A stretch of DNA of 63,137 nucleotides, the filler included, from Octopus bimaculoides (taxonomy: Eukaryota), in the NCBI RefSeq assembly GCF_001194135.2. It is 6 parts of 6 records of this genome, joined end to end, with 100 filler letters (N's around TTAATTAATTAA, not from the genome) between each part and the next. Parts side by side here need not be neighbours in the genome. Positions count along the whole stretch, not along the records: positions 50,616 to 61,858 come from NC_068984.1; 5 more parts are not named here. The stretch is one strand, 5' to 3'. The notes beneath the pieces were generated by a model that saw only the letters and a program-made list of their open reading frames with translations, made no database searches and was not told the origin of the DNA. Positions 50,516 through 61,858 of this stretch are shown in pieces (positions within the stretch are counted from its first letter, which is position 1; each line of letters starts with the position of its first letter). Made by a program: the position numbers and the translations under genes.

Positions 50516-51339
50516 NNNNNNNNNNNNNNNNNNNNNNNNNNNNNNNNNNNNNNNNNNNNTTAATTAATTAANNNNNNNNNNNNNNNNNNNNNNNNNNNNN
50601 NNNNNNNNNNNNNNNCCATAAATACATTTATTTGCTATAAAAAAGAAAATTTAAGAAATTGAATTTTTTGCAACCCCACTCTCTGACCCCCGATTATTTC
50701 TGTTTAGAAATTAAAATATTGGAGAGCCTGAGAAGGTCATTGCTAGCATTTATCCACAGTGATTTTTAAAAAAGAGTTACGTAAACGATAATTCATTTTA
50801 GTAGCATACTTTGTTAGAAAATATTTTTTCTTACATACACATACACGACATCGCTTGATTGAGGTGGCGGTAAAAATTTAGATTACAATTTTTGTTGCTG
50901 CTTATAGTCCACGAATGGAGTACGCTTGTGTTACTTCGGCATCGTCATTCCATAAAATGTATTTAATGGGAGAAAAATATTGAAAAAATATCAATTCATG
51001 TGAGAGTAAAAACAGAGGGTGGTTTGGGTTGTGCTAGAAACAACAGTGAAGCCTCCTTTGAATTGTTTACCTTCTTTGAAAATATTTACAATTTTTTTTT
51101 ACCGAAAAGATTCTTCCCGTGGTTTTTAAGTTAAAAAGGAAAATGGCCAAAATTGGACCGGTTAGTTATTATTGTAAGGCTTATAGAGTTCCAAACAACC
51201 ATAACAACAAAATCACTTCTTAATTTTTTTTCCAAAAATTATACTGGTATATTAAAAAAATTTCATTCAATAAATAATGTTTTTACATTACCTATACATT
51301 ATTAGAATATCATTACATTTAGTATGATTGCTATTTGCC

Positions 51340-52760
51340 CTGTATTCAAGAGGTTGAGATGTGATTTAATTTGGGTTGTTTCCTCTTGTACACTAGACGA
51401 CTCAAGTGCACATTTCTTATTAACATTTGTTCTAAGAGCATTACCATTGTTGCATTTACGACGGTTATAATTATTATAAGAATTAGATCACTTTGTTTTT
51501 CCGTTAATTGAAGATATAATCTGGGACAAGTTATTTGATACAGAAAAGTCAACTTTAAAAAACCTAAGGTTAATAATATCATAATATTTATTTTCCTTTG
51601 TAAAGTGTTTAGAAAAAAGTTTGTATAAGGCCCCGACCAAATTATTCTTCATTTGCTTAGCGAATGGAATTATAAACGAAATAATGTCGTTCATATCAGG
51701 AGATGCATCATATTTTTCAAATTTTCGAACCCTATTAAATATATGAGGGGTTTATTTTTTACCCTATTATTCATATTTCTAATCGTATGAGAACAATTAG
51801 AAGAACGAAGTAATGCATTGGTTCTCATATTTCGTATATCGTTTTTCTTATCTGTACATTTAACCTTACTTACCCTATTCTTATTCCTATCCCTAGCAGT
51901 CTGTTTAAAATATTTACTAACACGAGAAACATCCATGTTGTTAGAGATACTGATATTCTTCTTTTTAGGATATTTCAATTTTTGTCTATACCCAGCTTTG
52001 CTGAGTGCCACATTATAACAGCATTTTTGTCAAAAATATCCTACTTAGACGATAGATTAGAAATTATTTTAGAGATATTATAAACCAAAAAATCCTGGGA
52101 TGATTACTTTCGACATTTATATACTTAAGATTGGAGTTAGACTTATGGTATGGTTCGTAGTTGCCAATAATGGAGATTAAGATTAACATCTAGGAAGTTA
52201 ACCGATTCGTGTTCATATTCTATCGATATAGAGAGTTCAAAACTCTTTTAAGATCTGTAAAATTTCTCCTTATATAGTTCCAGTTTCCTATTAGATAGGT
52301 TCTTAATGGTAAAGAAGGCATCATCCCACAAGTTCAGGAAAATCTCTTCCTAAGATGACAATAATATAAATACCAACTAAATCTGTAACTTGGGCAGAAT
52401 ATGTAGAGCTCATAGCTATTCAATGCTATCCCTACTATCTATCTTAGTCCAATACTTGTTCTCAGACTCTACAATAGTTCTTCTGGCAGCTAAAAGAACA
52501 TCAGTCTCATTCATATTTATATTCGAGTTATTTTTCGCGAATAAAAGGGCCTTATTTAAAACTACTTAGTTAATTGAAGAGTAATAGCTATCAATATCTA
52601 TTTGCATTAATTTATTTCTATTTTCATACTTAATGCTATTAAACCAAACTATTACTTGATAGGTATTGGACCAGAGTTGTAACTTAATCCTTTCTTAAAG
52701 ACCCGGTATGTATTTATCTAAAATAGCTTTACTAAGTTTACCTAGGTCAGATTTTCCAAG
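51340..52760 (-). mobile_element. Penelope-like RT, heavily degraded (same type as 12353-15130)
   Basis: Minus-strand frames give LGKLSKAILDKY...WFNSI...QIDIDSYYSSI...LAARRTIV...YINVESNHP...LFSKHF...IISSIN. Confidence 0.75.
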
Positions 52761-52799
52761 CCAAATATATATATATATAAGGTACAGTGTATATTTAAG

Positions 52800-52990
52800 T
52801 ACATTAGAGGAATCCACTCATGGGATTCCTTACGCTAGAAAGAACTGCTAGGTTCTAGAACCACAAAATATGGTAAAAGTTTTTATTTTTCATCTCGTTC
52901 CTTTCGGAATTTTATCCCTAATTTTGTGGTTCTAGAACCTAGCAGTTCTTTCTAGCGTGAGGAATCCCATGAGTGGATTCCTCTTATGTA
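52800..52990. repeat. Hairpin/MITE-like inverted repeat in TA tract
   Basis: 70-bp arms (52800-52869 / 52921-52990) with 2 mismatches and a 51-bp spacer. Confidence 0.9.
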
Positions 52991-53369
52991 TCTAAATATA
53001 TATACATACATATATATATTATTTATATTCTTAAATCTCATATATTTTTACGTGTTTTTTTTTTTGTATTTATGGGCAGATGGGGTTCCTTAGCCATGAT
53101 GAGGACAACCCATGAAGGAGAAGGAAAGTTCTGATATAAAATTAGGTTTGTAGTTAACTGACGGTCCTTTTAGTTGATGTGCGCTATTAGTAACTACTTA
53201 TTCATAGGGCAGTCTGGGCTCCGTAACTTTTAAGCAACCAGACTAGGAGAGGGCCACTCAGTAAAGAAAGAAGCAGGTGTTAGGCTTGCTATTCGGAACG
53301 ACCTGGTAAAACAACTTCAGTCTCTGCCTGTTGTCATTGCGCATCTGCAGTGGAAGGTCAGTTGGTAGG

Positions 53370-53745
53370 CCACTCTTGCGCTTCAAAGACAAACTAAAAG
53401 ACAATCTGAAATGAAGCAACATTTCCTTTTTATTTCCTAGAAAAACAAAACATCAGAACTCGGGACCTGGCAAAATCGACTCCAACATTGGGACCAGCTT
53501 CGTGGAAGCATGAAGGTACGCTGACAAAACATGGCTCCTCTAAATGGAAATCTTACCTGTCATTGTGGTTTTGTGGCACGAAGCAAAGCAGGCCTAGCCA
53601 ACCGCTCAAGAAAACACAAAGTAAATAATCCCCAAGCACTCAAGCAAACTAAGTCTTCAACTTGTTCCATTTGCCAAAAGGTTTGCAAGGCTTCAAGAGA
53701 CGCGTTCGTGTCCATAGAACATGATAATGCTTCATTTTGCTGAAC
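53370..53745 (+). mobile_element. RTE (BovB-like) LINE 3' fragment
   Basis: LRFKDKLKDNLK..., then C-terminal finger-like TCHCGFVARSKAGLANRSRKH and TCSICQKVCK. Confidence 0.55.
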
Positions 53746-54596
53746 ACTCATTTGTAGTTCACGACAAGAGAATCCATCCATCTACATGTGTGTGTGTGCG
53801 TCTGTGCGTCTGTGTGTGTATTACCTATCAGGCATTTCAAACAATAAAGTTTCCAAGTCCATCTTTCTCAAAAATATTTCCAGGCTATCTCAACTTAATC
53901 TCCAGGATACAGAGTATCTTTGACTTCTTTGCTTCCATTTTCATAGTGAGCACATTATTATTATAAAGATTATCCCGCCAGTACGAGGGAAACGTTTGTT
54001 TTAAAATATCTAAAAATTCTTTCGATGACCTGTTACTGTAGTTCAAAATAAGCAACTCAATAATAAACTACTCTATAAAGTTTGTGCGTGTGTGTGTGCC
54101 TGTGTGTGGGCGCGCGCGTGTTTAGTGTTCTTACAATACAAGTCCCAAAACGGATCTTTTCTGTCTGGCGCTAAATTTTTGAAATTTTGAAATTAAATGA
54201 AAATTTTCAAATTCGGTATATTGATGTAATTTTTCACGTTGAATCTGTTGCTGTTATTTACTTGTTTCAGAAAAGTTTTAGAACAATGTTACAGCGGTTT
54301 AAAGTTTGATTATTTTTATCCAATCAGAAAATAAGATTTAGAAGCTGGCAATTTCTGCGTAATAACTTTGATTAAACAAATGGGAGCTATATATTATGAC
54401 ATCGAAAGTTGTAAGAGGTTTTTCATAAGTTTAAATGAATGAAGTCATGTGAAACGATAGAGCAGGAAGAATCGTCAATGTTTTTTTTGTTTTTGTTTTT
54501 TTTGCGAAACATTACAATACGACAAATTGTTCTACTGCAGTTCTGTTCATATAAACAATTAAAAGCGAAAAGTCAAAAACGAAAGTTTGATATACA

Positions 54597-54787
54597 TTAG
54601 AGTTATAGTATGGCTGGGAAGTAGGGTTAGACTTATGGTGTACAGTTAGAGTTTATGGTTGAGCTTCAGAGTAACAATTAGGGTTTAGGATTTAGGGTTT
54701 AGAGCTAGAGTTAGGGTTTAGCGTTAAAGTTTAAGGTTAGAATTAGGGTTTAGGGTTAGACTTAGAGCTTAGGGTTGGCGTTTAGGT
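54597..54787 (+). repeat. Degenerate telomere-like (TTAGGG/TTTAGGG) interstitial array
   Basis: Several exact ttaggg and tttaggg units mixed with ttagag, ttagac and ttatgg variants. Confidence 0.75.
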
Positions 54788-55022
54788 AAATTATAAAAAG
54801 CTATTAATCTTTTTATCGATTAATTTATGGAAAAAATTAGTTTCATCTCCATAATTAACATGCACAACTACATCAATACATCAAATTTGAAATCAATTGT
54901 AACAAAATTGAAGCGATTGAGAAGTAAAGGCCAAACAGAAGAGAACCCACAAAAGTTTTAAATTTTAATCAATAATATAAAGGAAGTTTCGAATAGTCAT
55001 ATCTGCTCATACAGTTGTTTTC

Positions 55023-55796
55023 TTACACATAGTATCTTGCCTTTGTTGAATGTTCCCTTGGTTCAAAGTGAGATATTCTTAATAACTGCTTCATCTGTTC
55101 ATGAACATCTACTATTTCTCTCTCCTTTCCATTATACCCTGTCAGATCTGACAAGTCATCAAGCCATCCGGTGTGGGAGCCAAGGACAACTATTCCCGTA
55201 TAAATAGCCGTTGCCGCTACAAGATTTGGTTTATAGCCAAATTTTACGCTAACAATCTCATCATATAGCGCTAGTTCCAATATATAGTTGGTCATACTAT
55301 ACAAATCGTGATAGGGTTCCAATCTGAGAATAACATGGAAATACGAAAGGAAGACATAAGGAGTAACAAAAAATGTTTTACCTCTGAAACGGTTAAGAAC
55401 CAAAAGATACATTCTACGAAGCTCAGCTAAAGAAGACTCTGGGTCGACTCTGGAAGTCATAGCAACAATTGCAAAACCCTCACGTGTCTTAATATTTTCT
55501 ATCGTATCAAAAGCAATTTTAAGACATATAGCTCCAACACATTGCATTTTTTCGCATGATAACGTCGGTGCCTTTTCAGAAGACAAGAATAAGTCAAATA
55601 ATGCAACTGATAAGTGTACGACATCCATAATACCTTCGAAATGATTTACACATGCTATCATCCAGTTGACCACAATCTTACGATCTTCAGGCTGAAAATT
55701 ATGGCGACCTTCTCGAAAATAATCACGGACTCTCTTCTGTCGTTTTTCTTGATCAAATAGGTTCTCTAAATTTGCAAGACAAGCTGAATATTCCAT
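55023..55796 (-). CDS. Divergent A/B-type cyclin-fold protein, 257 aa, single coding exon
   Basis: Uninterrupted ATG-TAA ORF in a TE-decayed region. Cyclin N box DRKIVVNWM...LSVALFDLFL...MQCVGAICLKIA...RRMYLLVL...TPYVFL. C box YILELALYD...KPNLVAATAIY...W...L...TGY. ATTAAA about 55 nt after the stop. Confidence 0.88.
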   Translation of the reverse strand: MEYSACLANLENLFDQEKRQKRVRDYFREGRHNFQPEDRKIVVNWMIACVNHFEGIMDVVHLSVALFDLFLSSEKAPTLSCEKMQCVGAICLKIAFDTIENIKTREGFAIVAMTSRVDPESSLAELRRMYLLVLNRFRGKTFFVTPYVFLSYFHVILRLEPYHDLYSMTNYILELALYDEIVSVKFGYKPNLVAATAIYTGIVVLGSHTGWLDDLSDLTGYNGKEREIVDVHEQMKQLLRISHFEPREHSTKARYYV

Positions 55797-55905
55797 GGTC
55801 GTTCTTCTGCAAAATTAAACGAAACTTGCTTGTTTAGAAAGTATAGCGAAGTGTGAAGTGGCGAAAACCACAAAAATTTATCAATTGATTACGTCATTCA
55901 AATGT
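55797..55905 (-). promoter_or_regulatory. Possible splice acceptor / proximal promoter of cyclin gene
   Basis: tttaattttgcag sits 10 nt upstream of the ATG. TTTGAA (CHR-like, 55897-55902) abuts TGACGTAA (ATF/CRE-like, 55889-55896). These short motifs are common in AT-rich DNA. Confidence 0.25.
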
Positions 55906-56554
55906 AACAATCATTAAATGTCGTTCTATTTTATTTGAATAATTAAAATCTTNNNNNNNNNNNNNNNNNNNNNNNNNNNNNNNNNNNNNNNNNNNNNAAA
56001 ATAACATGGAGTGTTTTAAATCTATTTAATGCCCAAAACTATTATAATAAAATTGCAAGGCATAACTTTTATGATATTTGGGCCTATAAAATACACAAAT
56101 CATAATTCTAACTTATTTGCAAAGTTTCTCAAATGCAAATGTATGTATTTAATCAACATACATGCATACATACATATATACATACATACATACATACGTA
56201 CATTCATGCATACATACATACATACATACATATACACACACACATGCATACACACACACTCACACGCATACACATTCATATATAAACGAACAAATAGAAA
56301 GTCATACAGGCAGACAGGCAGGTCGACGAACGGACAGGCAGAAAGACCGACAGACAGACAAGAAGTTAGATATAGATATCGATATAAATATATGAATATA
56401 TATTTGTATGGATGTACATATGTAATATGTACGTGTGTGTTTGTGCGTGTGTGTTTTTATGTGTGTATACGTGTTTTCTTTCTATGCATATACATATGCA
56501 TGTGTTTATGTGTGCATTGTGTAAATGTACATATGTGTATATGTGTGCATGTGT

Positions 56555-57610
56555 GCACGAGGAGGATACCGAAAGTAATTGAAAGATAAACGTGACATTT
56601 ATATCACCTGATAGATCGTTTAAATAGTACGTGTTGATAGAGCAACTCTTCGTCTAAGGCAACTCTTCTTCTTGTTCTTCATTGCAGGCAAATAATTGAT
56701 TCCAAGCAGAAATAACATACCGTTATTGAATTCTTGATAGAGAGGGATGCAAGCGGTCCGACATCCATACAAAGCTACTAGTTGCTTACGGAGAGATGAC
56801 GCTATTGACAGAAGTAATGTACGCTAACTGATGAAAATGTTTAAAAAAGAGGAAAACAACATTGAAGACAGACCGCGCACTGGAAAAACATCAACTGCGA
56901 TCATTGACACCATTCACCAGCAACTGGACGAATTAATTCGCTTAGTAAAAGTCACAATTCTTGAACTTCCTGCACTGTTATCAAAATGCATTAGAGAAGA
57001 TGGTGCGAGACTGGGTATCGCAAAGTGTGTGCAAAGTGGGTACATCGATTTGGAGGAGGGATAGGGTAAACGTCTGCTCTGAGCTGTTAGAAACATTTGA
57101 AGACATTTTTTTTTTCCGATCTGATGACAGGGGATGAAACGTGGGCGTATTTTTATTATCTACAAATGAAGACTCGGTCCATGGAATGGCGTTACATGCC
57201 TTCTCCAAGGCTTAAAAAGCTCAATCTAGCGATCAGTACAGGCATGGTGGGGATGACAAAAGCGTTATTTTCCTTGATTTTCTGGAGCGCATTTGTGATT
57301 TAAACAGCGAGCGGTATATTGAGACACTCAGAAAGATTTGAGGAAGTGACCGAACAAGAATCTGAAAACGATTAACATTCACCATGAAAATTCATGGACG
57401 CAAACATCTTTAGCAACAAATCAGGCAATCGGCAAACTGGACTCGTCAGTGACCACTTTTCACCTGAAGATGGATTTGGCGCTCTCCAACTTCCACCTGT
57501 TCAATCGAGAGTACAGTCTTTGAGGAGAATGATTTGATTTGATGACGGAGACGAGATGGGAGTAGTTGCGAAGAAGTGTACACCTGAGCTTTTACAAAGA
57601 TTCGAGACAC
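56555..57610 (+). mobile_element. mariner transposon, degraded
   Basis: ACGAGG..-type end, HTH-like VIEFL..DIH..L..AYGE, EDRPRTGK, MTGDETW, and later fragments similar to the DD34D C-terminus. Confidence 0.75.
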
Positions 57611-57725
57611 ACATACAAACACATGCTTACATATATACACAGATAAATATATATATATNNNNNNNNNNNNNNNNNNNNNNNNNNNNNNNNNNNNNNNNNN
57701 NNNNNNNNNNNNNNNNNNNNNNNNN

Positions 57726-58316
57726 GATATTTTTACATCACCACCCTCCTGTTTCATCCTTTTAAAAAGTTGTTCTATTTTTTCCATATTTATTTCAATG
57801 TTTTCGGTTGCCACTTCGGCAACCGCTGCAAACTTTTTTGTCATGTTATTCTCCTCTTTCTGACTCTCAATGAGTGACTGTTTTCCGGTAACAATTTCAA
57901 TTGGCATTTTCCCTTTACAAATGGGAGACCTATACAATATTATTATTATTATTAAATTTTAAACGAATTGTTCTCCTCTACGCAAGGACACAGAAGGTTC
58001 AAATCCCGCCCCCGCTGGGGGAGGGGCACAAGGGATAGTCTAAAAACGACTATTAACAGTTTGTACAAAAATTTTCACAGATACAAGAAATGCCTCAGTG
58101 GCCAAAAAATGTAACAGTTCTACAATTACTCCCCGGTAAACCGGGAAGTACAAAGTCCAACAAATTTTCCAGCACTTTCCAACAGATAATTCAACCGAAA
58201 ATTCAACAAGTACAACAACAGCAAGGCAATAATGACAGCAAGAAACACTTACCGGGTAACGAACAGAATACGTCCAAACGCAACCTTACCAGAAGTGATG
58301 CAATTGCGCCAAACCA
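57726..58316 (-). mobile_element. Second copy of Tx1-type LINE: 5' UTR and start of ORF1
   Basis: EENNMTKK...IEINMEKIEQLFKRMKQEGGDVKI matches ORF1 at 25060-25200. The 5' UTR blocks are shared with 25204-25617. Confidence 0.85.
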
Positions 58317-58808
58317 GAAGAAAGCTTCTTACCACACAGCCACGCCTTGTGTGCGCGTGTTTGTGTGTGTGTGGCTCAAATGTACAAAAAACAAAATACA
58401 GAAGACAGAGACAAGTGGCTCAACAACAAAGTGTATTAATTTCACGCTCAAGGAAAAATAGAAAAGTCTTTGACACTTAGAACCTCTTGATAAAGCAGGT
58501 CACAAAAACTTAGGATTATTTTTTTTCTTTTTACTCTATTAATATTATATGAACTTTGGCGATATAAGTGAATGATATTTTTATGATATACAGTTAACAT
58601 AACAGATATAATTTCTAACGTTGGCACAAGCCCACATATGTTAGAAGAAGATGCATATGATTGGTATTTCCTTTGTATTTTATCTGTGCCGAATAAAAGA
58701 TGAAAGTCAAAAATCAAACAGAGGTGCATTTGAAATTACTCATAAAATATATAAAGAAATTAGACTATTTTATTTTAGTTTTGAAACATATATTGTATAA
58801 AATTCAAA

Positions 58809-58862
<54 letters not shown>

Positions 58863-58879
58863 TACTTTTAATCTGCATG

Positions 58880-60165
58880 TTTGTTACAGTCACTCGCTGA
58901 GACGCACCCAGTTTCCTGGGGCAGGTGTCGGATAAGAGATGTTATAGTATGACTGAACGCTTGCGGAGGGGAAGTAGTGAAATATCTTCATGTAATACAA
59001 CACAGACATTTAAATGGATAGGGTTTTTCTAAGGGTGTGGGCAGTACTTGTCAGTACAATCTTTTGAATTTTTCTGAAACATGGTTCTCCTGGGATCTTA
59101 TCTAGATGTTCCTGACATCTCTTTTTTCTATCATACCTAGGGCACCTTCAATAACAGGAACAGTTCCCGTTTTAAGATGCCACATCTTTTGTATTTCAAT
59201 TTCCAGGTCCTTATATTTACTTAATTTGTCAAATTCCTTGACAGATACATTTTTAACAGTGGGAACACTTACATCTATCAGTCTACAAGTATTTTCTTCC
59301 TTGTCTTTTATAATTACGTCTGGTCGATTATCCTTGATCGTTATGTCAGTGTTTACTAGAAAATCCCAGAGGGGAGTGATATTTTTACCTTCAATGACTG
59401 GCTCAGGATGTTGTTCATACCAGTAAACAGGAGTGCTGATTTTGTACTGTTTACATATTTTCCTGTGTAAATACTATCCTACCCTATCGTTACGATTTTT
59501 GTATTCGTTTGGNNNNNNNNNNNNNNNNNNNNNNNNNNNNNGTGCTGCTAATATGAAACCTTCAGCTTCTGCTTTCAGTCCTGAACTTCTCAGCCACTGA
59601 TGGGCTATTGCTTGATCTACATCAGCATTTCGACTTCGAAGTATATACTGTCCATGCAGAGGCTTCTGGCTCTACCGCTCCTCAATTTGTTTCTGCCCGT
59701 TCTTTTTTGCAGTCGGTTTGATCCATTTTGCTTGTTTTGTGGCAATGGTTTCAGGTTCTTCAAATATTTAAATATTTCAGAATTAATGCCAAGTTCCTTT
59801 GCGAATATGAAAGCTTCCTTGATAAATAAATTATATTATCTTTGGCAGCTTTCGTGTTTGCACACAAGACGCAGCATCCAGTCCTCTGTACTGGATGTGT
59901 ACCTATTCGTTGGTATTGTGGAGTTCTTTTAGCGCTGTTCGACCTGCATCATCTCACTTCCCCCATTACTTCTAGGTAGGTACAAACGATCAACATCTGC
60001 TTTTGGGTAGTACATGTGCTTAGGAATTAGTAGTTTTCTTGTCTTCCTGTCCAGGCGTTGGAGCTCTGTAAGATTCCAGTTAATGATGTTAAAACTATAT
60101 TGGACTACTGGAAGTGCCAGAGTGTTAATAGCTTCGATGTGATTTTTATAGTTGAGTTCAGTTTT
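58880..60165 (-). mobile_element. R4/Dong-type LINE 3' half, flanked by (TAA)n on both sides
   Basis: EAINTLALPVVQYSF..W...L.RLDRKTRK...DRLYLPRSNGG; aggactgaaagcagaagctgaaggtttcatattagcagc (GLKAEAEGFILAA); GTVPVIEGALG. Confidence 0.85.
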
Positions 60166-60183
60166 GTTGTTATTATTGTTATG

Positions 60184-60278
<95 letters not shown>

Positions 60279-60299
60279 CATCATTATTATTATACACAA

Positions 60300-60900
60300 C
60301 AAATTAAACTGTTGGAAAAGAAAAATGCCTGACATTGGGCTACAACAAGTAATTTTAAATGCCAAGAACCCTCCTAAGTATCATAGCTGTCCCTAATAGC
60401 ACTGTTGCCTGGAACTGTGCTAAACTGGGTTGTATGCTTATTTCCTCTATCCATCTGTTCAAATCTTTAGGGATAGTTCCTAATGCACCTCCAACTATTT
60501 GGATACATTTACCCACACTTTCCATTTGCCTCTGTAATTCAATGGCTAGGTTCTGGTACTTTGCTATTTTTTCTATACTTCTCATATTGATTTTTTTCGT
60601 CATTTGGTAAGGTTCATTATCTGACACTTCCTCTTCTCTTTACTACTACTAAATCAGGCCTTCTAGCTTATATTACTCTATTAGTCTGAACGTTAAAGTC
60701 ACACAACATCTTATATATCTTACTTTCTAGCACTCTCCTAGGTTCATGTTCATACCATTTATGAGTGCGGTCATATCCTAGCTTTCTACACAACTCCCAG
60801 TGGATTACTCTCCCTATGTTGTCATATCTTCTCTTGTATTTTTTCTGTGCTACATTCACTTACTATATGAGTAGCACTTTCATCTTTTGATATGCATAGC
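60300..60900 (-). mobile_element. R4/Dong-type LINE 3' fragment upstream of (TAA)n
   Basis: YKRRYDNIGRVIHWELC...HKWYEHEP...EKIAKYQNLAIEL...VGGALGTIP..LLGTAMILRRVL. Confidence 0.85.
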
Positions 60901-61205
60901 CTTCTTTGGGAATCTAGTTGGCTTTTGCCTATCTTGGCTTTTATCCAATTAGTCCTTACAATACTTGTTGAGCACTGGCTTCGATGTGATTGATGATAAC
61001 CCCCCCCCCCCCAAAAAAAANNNNNNNNNNNNNNNNNNNNNNNNNNNNNNNNNNNNNNNNNNNNNNNNNNNNNNNNNNNNNNNNNNNNNNNNNNNNNNNN
61101 NNNNNNNNNNNNNNNNNNNNNNNNNNNNNNNNNNNNNNNNNNNNNNNNNNNNNNNNNNNNNNNNNNNNNNNNNNNNNNNNNNNNNNNNNNNNNNNNNNNN
61201 NNNNN

Positions 61206-61858
61206 CCCATAGTGAGGAAGGATTATTTTTATTCAGTAGTCTTATTTTTATCATGTGATTTCACTTCACTACTGAGCGCAGCTCTGTGTGCCTTGGATAT
61301 GGGCTGTGGTTCGTTGTGGTGCTCTTATTTTCACCGTATTGAAAGTGTTTTACGTAAGATGTGTGCCTAACAGTGCTATATTCTGAATTTTATACCTACT
61401 TGTAAGTCCTGGTGTTTTTGTTAATTAGAAGGTATTTTTTCTTGGCGATCTCTGACAACTATATCAGGCCTATTAGCCTTGGTTTCTCTATCTGTGTGTA
61501 TTGGCATATCCCAAAGTATGGTGGCTTTCTCAATTTCTGCGTCTTTTTCTGGGGTGTGCCTATACCATCTTTTTCTCTGTTGCTATTCCATAGTTATTGT
61601 TATTCTAAGCCTTAAACTAATGAGTAAGTAGAAAGGTCATTCCATTGTGTTGGCATAGCTTCCAGTGTATATAGGTCCCAATTCTGTCGGGTGTGTAAAT
61701 ATATTCTTTCTTAGCCAGGACTGGGCACTCAGAAACAATATGATTATTTCTTCTTTATCACCACATATTCTGCAGTTACTTGTATTTTTTTTTTTTCATT
61801 ATGTGTTTTTGGTAGATTTCTGGTGGGAAGGCTTTGATCTTGTGCTGCAATTAAAGAT
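61206..61858 (-). mobile_element. R4/Dong-type LINE fragments, rearranged
   Basis: 61206-61430 is homologous to 50196-50420. TILWDMPIHTDRE on the minus strand near 61480-61530. Confidence 0.65.

Follow-up and report, generated by a model that had tools for sequence, protein, structure and literature searches.

A fast-evolving octopod family of double-box cyclin-like proteins lacking the Lys-Glu pair used to bind cyclin-dependent kinases

Introduction

Cyclins are among the most conserved regulators of eukaryotes. A Lys-Glu pair is critical for their binding to cyclin-dependent kinases (CDKs) and is conserved in all human cyclins, the atypical ones included, with cyclin F and CCNG2 (Arg for Lys) as the exceptions (Quandt et al., 2019; PMC6971155). 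Cyclins D1 and Y are impaired in CDK binding once the Lys by itself is mutated, cyclin F as the sole human cyclin without both residues was judged an unlikely CDK interactor, and the pair was proposed as a criterion for the name 'cyclin' (PMC6971155). Here we describe a cyclin-like gene on the minus strand of a 63,137-nucleotide stretch of Octopus bimaculoides DNA (the window), whose predicted protein has two cyclin boxes and neither of these residues, and the octopod family to which it belongs.

Cyclin F (CCNF/FBXO1) is a 786-aa F-box protein that uses its cyclin domain as a substrate-binding module. By analogy, this domain is the closest functional precedent for a cyclin box that would work independently of CDKs, and it lacks both Lys and Glu just as the octopus family does. 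However, cyclin F is conserved and single-copy and has a hydrophobic patch that is intact for Cy-motif substrates, whereas the octopus proteins have no F-box, carry an altered patch, are tandemly duplicated and evolve fast, and the sequence similarity between the two is low (38 bits). Viral cyclins of gammaherpesviruses and giant viruses resemble the octopus proteins in having nothing but the boxes within about 220-260 aa and in their intronless genes; the v-cyclins are D-type-like and bind and activate CDK6. Their structural similarity to the octopus protein (template modelling (TM) score 0.66-0.70) is lower than that of cellular cyclin A. Finally, CNTD1, CNTD2/CCNP, CCNO, CCNJ, CCNG, CCNI and CCNY are divergent cyclin-box proteins, as are the octopus proteins, with unclear or unusual kinase partners and in some cases germline-specific. 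Yet these atypical cyclins keep the Lys-Glu pair (with the Arg of CCNG2 in place of Lys) and most of them are single-box proteins (PMC6971155), unlike the octopus family with its two boxes and neither residue. The literature that we searched, including work on cephalopod, fast-evolving and CDK-independent cyclins, yielded no publication on this family.

Results

An open frame for a bare double cyclin box

The gene occupies a 257-codon open reading frame (ORF) at 55023-55796 (-), the longest ORF in the piece of the window from 50616 to 61858, and was matched to a gene call on chromosome CM046604.1 of the O. bimaculoides assembly GCA_001194135.2. The DNA around it has about 35% G+C, and an open frame of 257 codons at such a composition is far beyond chance. 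The original prediction described the gene as intact and single-exon. The 257 codons are indeed uninterrupted, but codon 258 is a TAA where the six closest copies have sense codons; the single exon is borne out for the coding sequence (CDS) only. The protein was also said to have no N-terminal extension, and this holds: the frame is open for only 6 codons upstream of the ATG, which stands in an ACCATGG context and is identical in all paralogues as their common start. The protein begins 35 residues before the helix equivalent to MRAIL and has no N-terminal regulatory region with a destruction box.

A profile search, which had been suggested as a check of the proposed two-box cyclin fold, placed both Pfam domains (Table 1) well above their gathering cut-offs of 23 bits for Cyclin_N and 22 bits for Cyclin_C. 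These were the only Pfam matches on the 257-aa protein; an F-box was absent and there is no room for a further domain. An AlphaFold model built on an alignment of 146 sequences reached a predicted local distance difference test score (pLDDT) of 95.7 and a predicted TM score (pTM) of 0.93; it replaced a model from the five closest sequences only, which was unusable (pLDDT 42). The double five-helix bundle of the model superimposes on solved cyclin A2, which was the best Foldseek match (TM 0.80-0.82, root-mean-square deviation 2.7 A), followed by cyclin B1 (TM 0.79). Viral cyclins (targets of 224-259 aa) fit less well, with E values of 2e-6 to 1e-4.

A single-sequence search of the PDB returned cyclin A2 first (E 3e-8), then D1, D3, F, B1 and E1, and a profile of the family scored 79 bits against A2, 58 against B1, 52 against D1 and 38 against E1 and F. 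The nearest named outsiders to the family are A-type cyclins of plants and algae and a Capitella protein; a specific parent gene, molluscan included, was not identified among these nearest outsiders. As a word-indexed homology search with the family profile recovered family members only and no named canonical cyclin, the subfamily placement rests on the PDB profile search and a few named representatives. By predicted fold and nearest relatives, the protein is an A/B-type cyclin derivative. Like cyclins A and B (e.g. human cyclin A2, PDB 1FIN/4I3Z), it has two five-helix boxes and an N-terminal helix; the family keeps the equivalents of R211, D240, W217, Q254, G257 and A264, and members other than the window copy have a C-terminal tail of the 'RY....VS' type. 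In contrast to cyclins A and B, the octopus proteins have neither the N-terminal regulatory region nor its destruction box, their alpha3-alpha4 loop is longer, their CDS is intronless, and the family outpaces neutral DNA where A/B cyclins are highly conserved.

Loss of both CDK-binding residues and an altered docking patch

We counted residues in the 146-sequence alignment, which comprises 135 canonical cyclins and 11 family members. The column of the invariant Lys (K266 in cyclin A2, K257 in CCNB1) holds Lys in 134/135 canonical cyclins and a gap in 11/11 family members. The Lys had been predicted to have changed to Asp. Its absence stands, but the change is a different one: profile and multiple alignments show a two-residue deletion of [S/A]K, the family reading IA-FDT against LASKFEE in cyclin A2. 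Since F96, D97 and T98 pair with F267, E268 and E269 of cyclin A2, the Lys has been deleted, and what D97 corresponds to is the first Glu in 'KFEE'; the ungapped alignment that set Asp against Lys was rejected in favour of the gapped profile alignment. At the column of the invariant Glu (E295 in cyclin A2, E286 in CCNB1), 133 of the 135 canonical cyclins have Glu, and the family has Tyr, His, Arg, Leu or Phe. The HMMER pairwise, family-profile and MAFFT alignments agree in placing Tyr130 of the window copy here, with LRMEHLVL paired with RRMYLLVL as originally proposed. The central claim that both CDK-binding residues are missing is upheld. The adjacent pair E268/E269 ('EE') of cyclin A2 is Asp/Thr in the window copy and is gone in 11/11 members. 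Three residues before F96, at position 93, the subgroup of the window copy carries a Lys or Arg, where distant members have Trp or Ser.

Three residues of the fold, R39 (the MRAIL Arg), W45 (the helix 1 Trp) and D68 (the IDRFL Asp), are invariant in 146/146 aligned sequences. Around them the reported motif changes were recovered, namely MRAIL to DRKIV and IDRFL to FDLFL, with the Asp kept and the Arg turned into Leu; this Arg is Leu or Ile in 10/11 family members. The RxL-docking patch is altered as well. Met210 is Met in 113/135 canonical cyclins and Asp or Asn in 11/11 family members, Glu220 is Glu in 88 and Asp in 21 of the 135 canonical cyclins and Ala or Ser in 11/11 family members; the equivalents of Leu253/Gln254 are kept. 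Leu255, like these a position of strong conservation in canonical cyclins, has become Cys in 10/11 members. Because the RxL patch itself is changed in all 11 members, the earlier suggestion that the protein acts as a substrate decoy is weakened. Going by the aligned residues, both the CDK face and the RxL-docking patch are rebuilt while the core of the fold is kept, and the Lys deletion and the Glu replacement are ancestral to the family. By the published Lys-Glu criterion (PMC6971155), the predicted octopus protein is not a CDK-binding cyclin.

An octopod family with tandem copies

What was first seen as a lone gene is one member of a multi-clade, tandemly duplicated family. Close copies number three in O. 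bimaculoides and four in O. sinensis. The former are the window copy on CM046604.1, LOC106872332 at a distance of 17 kb from it in convergent orientation, and LOC106877718 on an unplaced scaffold; the latter, Osin_A, B, C and D, lie in tandem on one strand about 8-12 kb apart, and Osin_C is the syntenic orthologue of the window copy. In a search that covered 15 billion proteins, all species-named family members were octopods (O. bimaculoides, O. sinensis, O. vulgaris and Argonauta hians), which agrees with the proposed lineage specificity; several others have no species name. When 1.84 billion cluster representatives were searched exhaustively with a profile, only five further family clusters came up, followed by a gap and then generic cyclins at E 1e-17 to 1e-12. 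These clusters comprise O. bimaculoides LOC106882405, on a different chromosome from the window copy, an Argonauta hians protein, an O. vulgaris / O. sinensis protein encoded 107 kb from the O. sinensis array, and unnamed proteins without a species name; their CDSs are essentially uninterrupted over 265-276 codons and share the start position. Throughout the family the products are bare A/B-type double cyclin boxes of 257-276 aa, each copy with an uninterrupted (intronless) CDS. The non-coding DNA of the P0009/P0168 loci (ERZ21867824, Sequence Read Archive runs) had nothing in common with Octopus.

In a distance tree, computed without bootstrap, the family is monophyletic on a long stem, with a mean distance to canonical cyclins of about 2.0 against about 1.5 among canonical cyclins. 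With the Argonauta protein clustering beside one Octopus subclade, several paralogous lineages seem to be older than the Octopus-Argonauta split. Taken together, sequence and distribution describe an octopod-restricted, tandemly duplicated family.

Osin_B (L001:22142-22957, O. sinensis CM016862.1) shares 94.5% protein identity with Osin_D and has a TAG at codon 35. Two annotated gene models in O. sinensis are at odds with the unspliced frames. The NCBI model 'cyclin-B2-1-like' (P0002, L001:10001-30206) joins about 38 residues of Osin_A across about 19 kb to Osin_C, which has a complete ORF and a start codon of its own; this chimeric model stems either from an error of annotation or from splicing that reads through from one tandem copy to another. 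In XP_029634932.1 (L011:8001-13035) an exon 4.2 kb further downstream supplies the last 21 residues by splicing. Read without splicing, the frame at that locus runs into the family-typical tail, and the Argonauta protein aligns to it uninterrupted over 267 residues.

Selection on the reading frames

We analyzed selection by counting methods on the seven close copies. Pairwise dN/dS (nonsynonymous over synonymous divergence) is mostly 0.8-1.3, rises to 1.6-2.1 between the window copy and Osin_C (dN 0.163, dS 0.101) and is 2.5 between the other two O. bimaculoides copies. The seven-copy alignment contains 0 indels over 272 codons and 2 stops. When neutral evolution was simulated on the seven-copy tree with its 477 substitutions, a mean of 34 stops accumulated and none of 3000 runs ended with 2 stops or fewer. 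The flanks point the same way: over 3.3 kb of orthologous sequence, the window copy and Osin_C diverge by 0.078-0.089 (Jukes-Cantor) with 23 gap openings, against 0.153 and 0 gaps in the CDS. The CDS thus evolves about 1.8 times faster than its flanks, and of the roughly 5 indels expected in it at the flank rate none was observed. These data bear out the proposal that selection keeps the frame open.

By parsimony, the window lineage took 65 nonsynonymous (N) and 9 synonymous (S) changes and Osin_C 23 N and 6 S. The N excess on the window lineage is significant against a simulated neutral N fraction of 0.74-0.77 (P=0.003-0.017), and pooling the three O. bimaculoides lineages gives P<=0.0004. 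The ratio omega follows the fold. It is low in the buried helices alpha2 (0.38), alpha1' (0.47), alpha3 (0.48) and alpha3' (0.70), is 1.2 in the alpha3-alpha4 loop plus alpha4, and is high on surface elements, with 2.4 for alpha5', 2.8 for the N-terminal helix and 3.4 for the alpha1-alpha2 loop. A dN/dS near 1 had been named beforehand as a mark of decay. Here it is a mix of strong purifying and strong diversifying selection, and values of 1 and above reflect the latter; the case is a methodological warning that dN/dS near 1 need not mean decay.

A premature stop in the window copy

The TAA at codon 258 (Gln258->stop) replaces a CAA, AAA, CCA or TCA and is the single lesion of the window copy, which has no indels. 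It lies beyond the Cyclin_C match and removes a tail of 14-19 aa that most other family members keep, including a conserved S..DYS..Y-like motif; a relic of this tail follows in frame behind the stop (Table 1). Among the seven copies the window copy has the longest branch, with 20 private, mostly conservative changes where its six closest relatives do not vary. Under neutrality 3.6-4.9 stops would be expected on its lineage, and one is seen, at the very end. We infer that the window copy is a C-terminally shortened variant on which positive selection has acted since O. bimaculoides and O. sinensis diverged; this variant may have retained a function or may have lost it only of late.

A conserved region upstream of the start codon

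Conservation among all seven close copies extends to about 400 nt upstream of the ATG, and in 21/21 pairs identity is higher over the proximal 158 nt than over the CDS (means 89.4% vs 81.8%). Between the window copy and Osin_C, identity is 94.9% in this proximal region, 86.1% in the CDS and 91.6-92.6% in the general flanks. An octamer resembling the cAMP response element (CRE)/ATF site, TGACGTAA, is identical in 5/6 copies scanned, Osin_A carrying TGACGCAA instead. In 5/5 independent family lineages the 320 nt before the ATG hold CRE half-sites, where 0.31 would be expected, and the LOC106882405 subclade shows a CRE half-site followed by TATATA. Directly before the ATG stands ttaattttgcag, which resembles a 3' splice site; with the CRE and the TATA-like element as close as about 100 nt on the upstream side, a splice acceptor and an unspliced short 5' untranslated region (UTR) are equally possible. 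Logan contigs were considered as evidence of transcription and rejected, since they are collinear with the genomic upstream DNA and are therefore genomic and carry no information on expression.

The conserved region of the window copy contains a 44-N assembly gap (55954-55997) where the other copies have about 100-150 conserved nt; further N runs lie near 57650-57720 and 61000-61230. Microsatellites of the (ACAT)n / (TGTA)n type (56156-56554) stand directly upstream of the conserved block, and ATGT repeats adjoin the block in several paralogues.

Table 1. Positions in the window of the cyclin-like gene and its elements
Feature	Position	Strand	Evidence
Uninterrupted CDS of the cyclin-like protein, 257 codons	55026..55796	(-)	ORF list; exact match to called gene, O. 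bimaculoides chromosome CM046604.1
First cyclin box, Pfam Cyclin_N, residues 11-135	55392..55766	(-)	E 9.7e-12, 45.2 bits; helices seen in model
Second cyclin box, Pfam Cyclin_C, residues 144-241	55074..55367	(-)	E 3.2e-11, 43.7 bits
DRKIV, residues 38-42, counterpart of the MRAIL helix; Asp38 = RxL-patch Met, Ala48 = nearby Glu220	55671..55685	(-)	Alignment
A95-F96 codons, junction lacking [S/A]-Lys (cyclin A2 S265-K266)	55509..55514	(-)	134/135 K vs 11/11 gap
Tyr130 codon, column of the invariant Glu	55407..55409	(-)	Alignments
TAA stop, codon 258 (Gln258->stop)	55023..55025	(-)	CAA, AAA, CCA or TCA in six closest copies
Relic of C-terminal tail, in frame behind the stop, ENNCMSRYDYSKLPLYY + stop	54969..55022	(-)	Read-through aligns with QENNYMSTFDYSHL... 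of the O. sinensis orthologue
Conserved upstream region, probable promoter and 5' UTR	55797..56190	(-)	7-copy alignment
CRE/ATF-like octamer TGACGTAA at -100, then TATA-like GATAAAT	55889..55896	(-)	Upstream alignment

Discussion

We wondered what such a protein might do. Lys and Glu are lost, the frames are under selection and change exceeds the neutral rate, which together probably point to a role other than switching on a CDK. With moderate confidence, we favour the reading that this octopod family, having lost the residues that grip CDKs, would provide CDK-independent binding scaffolds that face a fast-evolving partner. The founder would probably have arisen when an A/B-type cyclin mRNA was retro-copied without its 5' part, the copy then gaining a promoter of its own. 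The retro- or duplicate-derived origin proposed at the outset is plausible, as all CDSs are uninterrupted and the N-terminal third of A/B cyclins is missing, and a 5'-truncated retro-copy would account for a CDS that has neither introns nor an N-terminal region. Activation of a CDK via the canonical interface has most likely been lost; instead, a stable cyclin-box scaffold would probably bind another, rapidly co-evolving partner, with amino acid changes above the local neutral rate falling chiefly in the N-terminal helix, the alpha1-alpha2 loop, alpha4 and alpha5'.

Several points weigh against this reading. The selection tests are counting methods, as opposed to likelihood models, on seven close copies, between which gene conversion may have occurred. 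The structural model leans towards a canonical cyclin fold because its alignment is dominated by canonical cyclins. The Lys or Arg at position 93 might conceivably stand in for the lost Lys. Osin_B, a recent duplicate, is clearly disabled, and the window copy, with its premature stop, long branch and 20 private changes, could be a young pseudogene; on its lineage alone, the probability of seeing one stop or fewer under neutrality is only as low as 0.05-0.13. A germline or conflict setting, which is discussed below, is suggested by analogy only.

Should the family be expressed, it would offer a natural experiment on a cyclin box without a CDK and would be a candidate for an innovation specific to its lineage, cephalopods being known for novel gene families. 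A whole two-box clade without the Lys-Glu pair and with an altered docking patch has persisted from Octopus to Argonauta at least.

The status of the window copy is a question separate from that of the family. That it alone is a very young pseudogene of a functional family, Gln258->stop having cost it a needed tail, is doubtful but has to be taken seriously, and would be compatible with the scaffold reading at the level of the family. The stop at a codon that is sense in the six closest copies, the conservation of the lost tail motif in most other members, the longest branch with its private changes and the precedent of a disabled sister copy in O. sinensis all fit such a fate. Against it stand an omega of about 1.9 on the window lineage, significantly above the neutral N:S ratio (P=0.003-0.017), a single terminal stop against 3.6-4.9 expected and 0 indels against about 5. 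Moreover, the private changes are mostly conservative, the stop falls outside the Cyclin_C domain match, and the proximal promoter matches that of the orthologue more closely than the flanks do.

It is unlikely, though not without precedent, that the family still serves a kinase. Here the remodelled face (alpha3-alpha5 and the N-terminal helix) would bind and regulate a CDK or CDK-like kinase non-canonically, and the fast evolution would mean that the family keeps pace with this kinase or with regulators that compete with it. CDKs can be activated in the absence of the canonical contacts, as they are by p35, which has a cyclin fold, and by the unrelated Speedy/RINGO proteins. The octopus family keeps both cyclin boxes entire, alpha3 is under purifying selection (omega about 0.5), and the diversifying regions include what was once the CDK face (the alpha3-alpha4 loop with alpha4, and the N-terminal helix). 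A substitute contact might be sought in K/R93 of the window subgroup, but this residue is Trp or Ser in distant members. Against a kinase partner also speaks that Lys, Glu and the adjacent EE are gone in 11/11 members, given that mutation of the Lys alone impairs CDK binding in D1 and Y and that cyclin F, without both, was judged an unlikely interactor (PMC6971155).

Tandem duplication, omega above 1 and a CRE-type promoter are, by analogy, typical of germline, reproductive or conflict-driven genes. We therefore also considered that the family belongs to a germline-expressed, conflict-driven system, in which box-only cyclin mimics, no longer bound to CDK activation, would act as antagonists or decoys in meiosis or gametogenesis, for instance in sperm competition or in meiotic drive or its suppression. 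In a variant of this reading, they would have a non-canonical kinase as their co-evolving partner. This we hold to be rather improbable. If it were true, the duplications and the positive selection would record an arms race, and this would be the first cyclin box found to be so recruited in molluscs.

It is very improbable that the family stems from a viral cyclin, herpes-like or from a giant virus, that was endogenised in an octopod ancestor. Such an origin would explain the short, intronless, box-only form of 257-276 aa, which is like that of viral cyclins (targets of 224-259 aa), and the viral structural matches. But the viral TM scores stay below the 0.79-0.82 reached by cyclins A2 and B1, sequence profiles put cellular A-type cyclins first, and next to the copies we saw transposon remnants and no viral genes. 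Finally, the idea that the whole family consists of neutrally decaying processed pseudogenes of a mitotic cyclin, to which the dN/dS of 0.8-1.3 for most pairs, the intronless CDS without an N-terminal region and the stops in two copies might lend themselves, is effectively refuted by the absence of any comparably open outcome in 3000 neutral runs (34 stops on average vs 2), by 0 indels in 7 x 272 codons vs 23 gap openings in the flanks, by an omega of 0.38 to 3.4 patterned by the fold, by a CDS that outruns neutral flanks, by conserved promoter-proximal DNA and by frames that are still open over 265-271 aa in distant members, that of Argonauta included.

Neighbouring DNA

A degenerate interstitial (TTAGGG)n-like array of about 12 units lies at 54678-54786, 240-350 nt downstream of the stop of the gene. 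A like TTAGGG array is found at equal offset in the orthologous O. sinensis locus, and three other O. sinensis copies are followed by such hexamers at a distance of about 660-690 nt; from these matching positions, the array has long been part of the unit that was duplicated.

A Pfam search of eight neighbouring ORFs in the piece gave no match. Two short ORFs at 56831-57303 (+) resemble a mariner-type transposase (…DRPRTGKTST…, …TGDETWAYFY…); they have no Pfam match and this reading is unconfirmed. Mariner-type genes (Transposase_1, HTH_48) adjoin family members in Argonauta and in genomes without a species name. ORF fragments at 59929-60859 (-) resemble the C-terminus of a non-LTR (long terminal repeat) retrotransposon reverse transcriptase, likewise an unconfirmed reading with no Pfam match. 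(TTA)n repeats occur at 58813-58862 and 60170-60293, where a long (TTA)41 splits the reverse-transcriptase-like fragments and yields a poly-Asn / poly-Ile ORF. In the region 53100-53900 the G+C content peaks at 0.42-0.44 vs about 0.31 around it, with overlapping ORFs of 70-81 aa on both strands; one of them, with no Pfam match, is Cys/His-rich (…CHCGF…CSICQKVC…).

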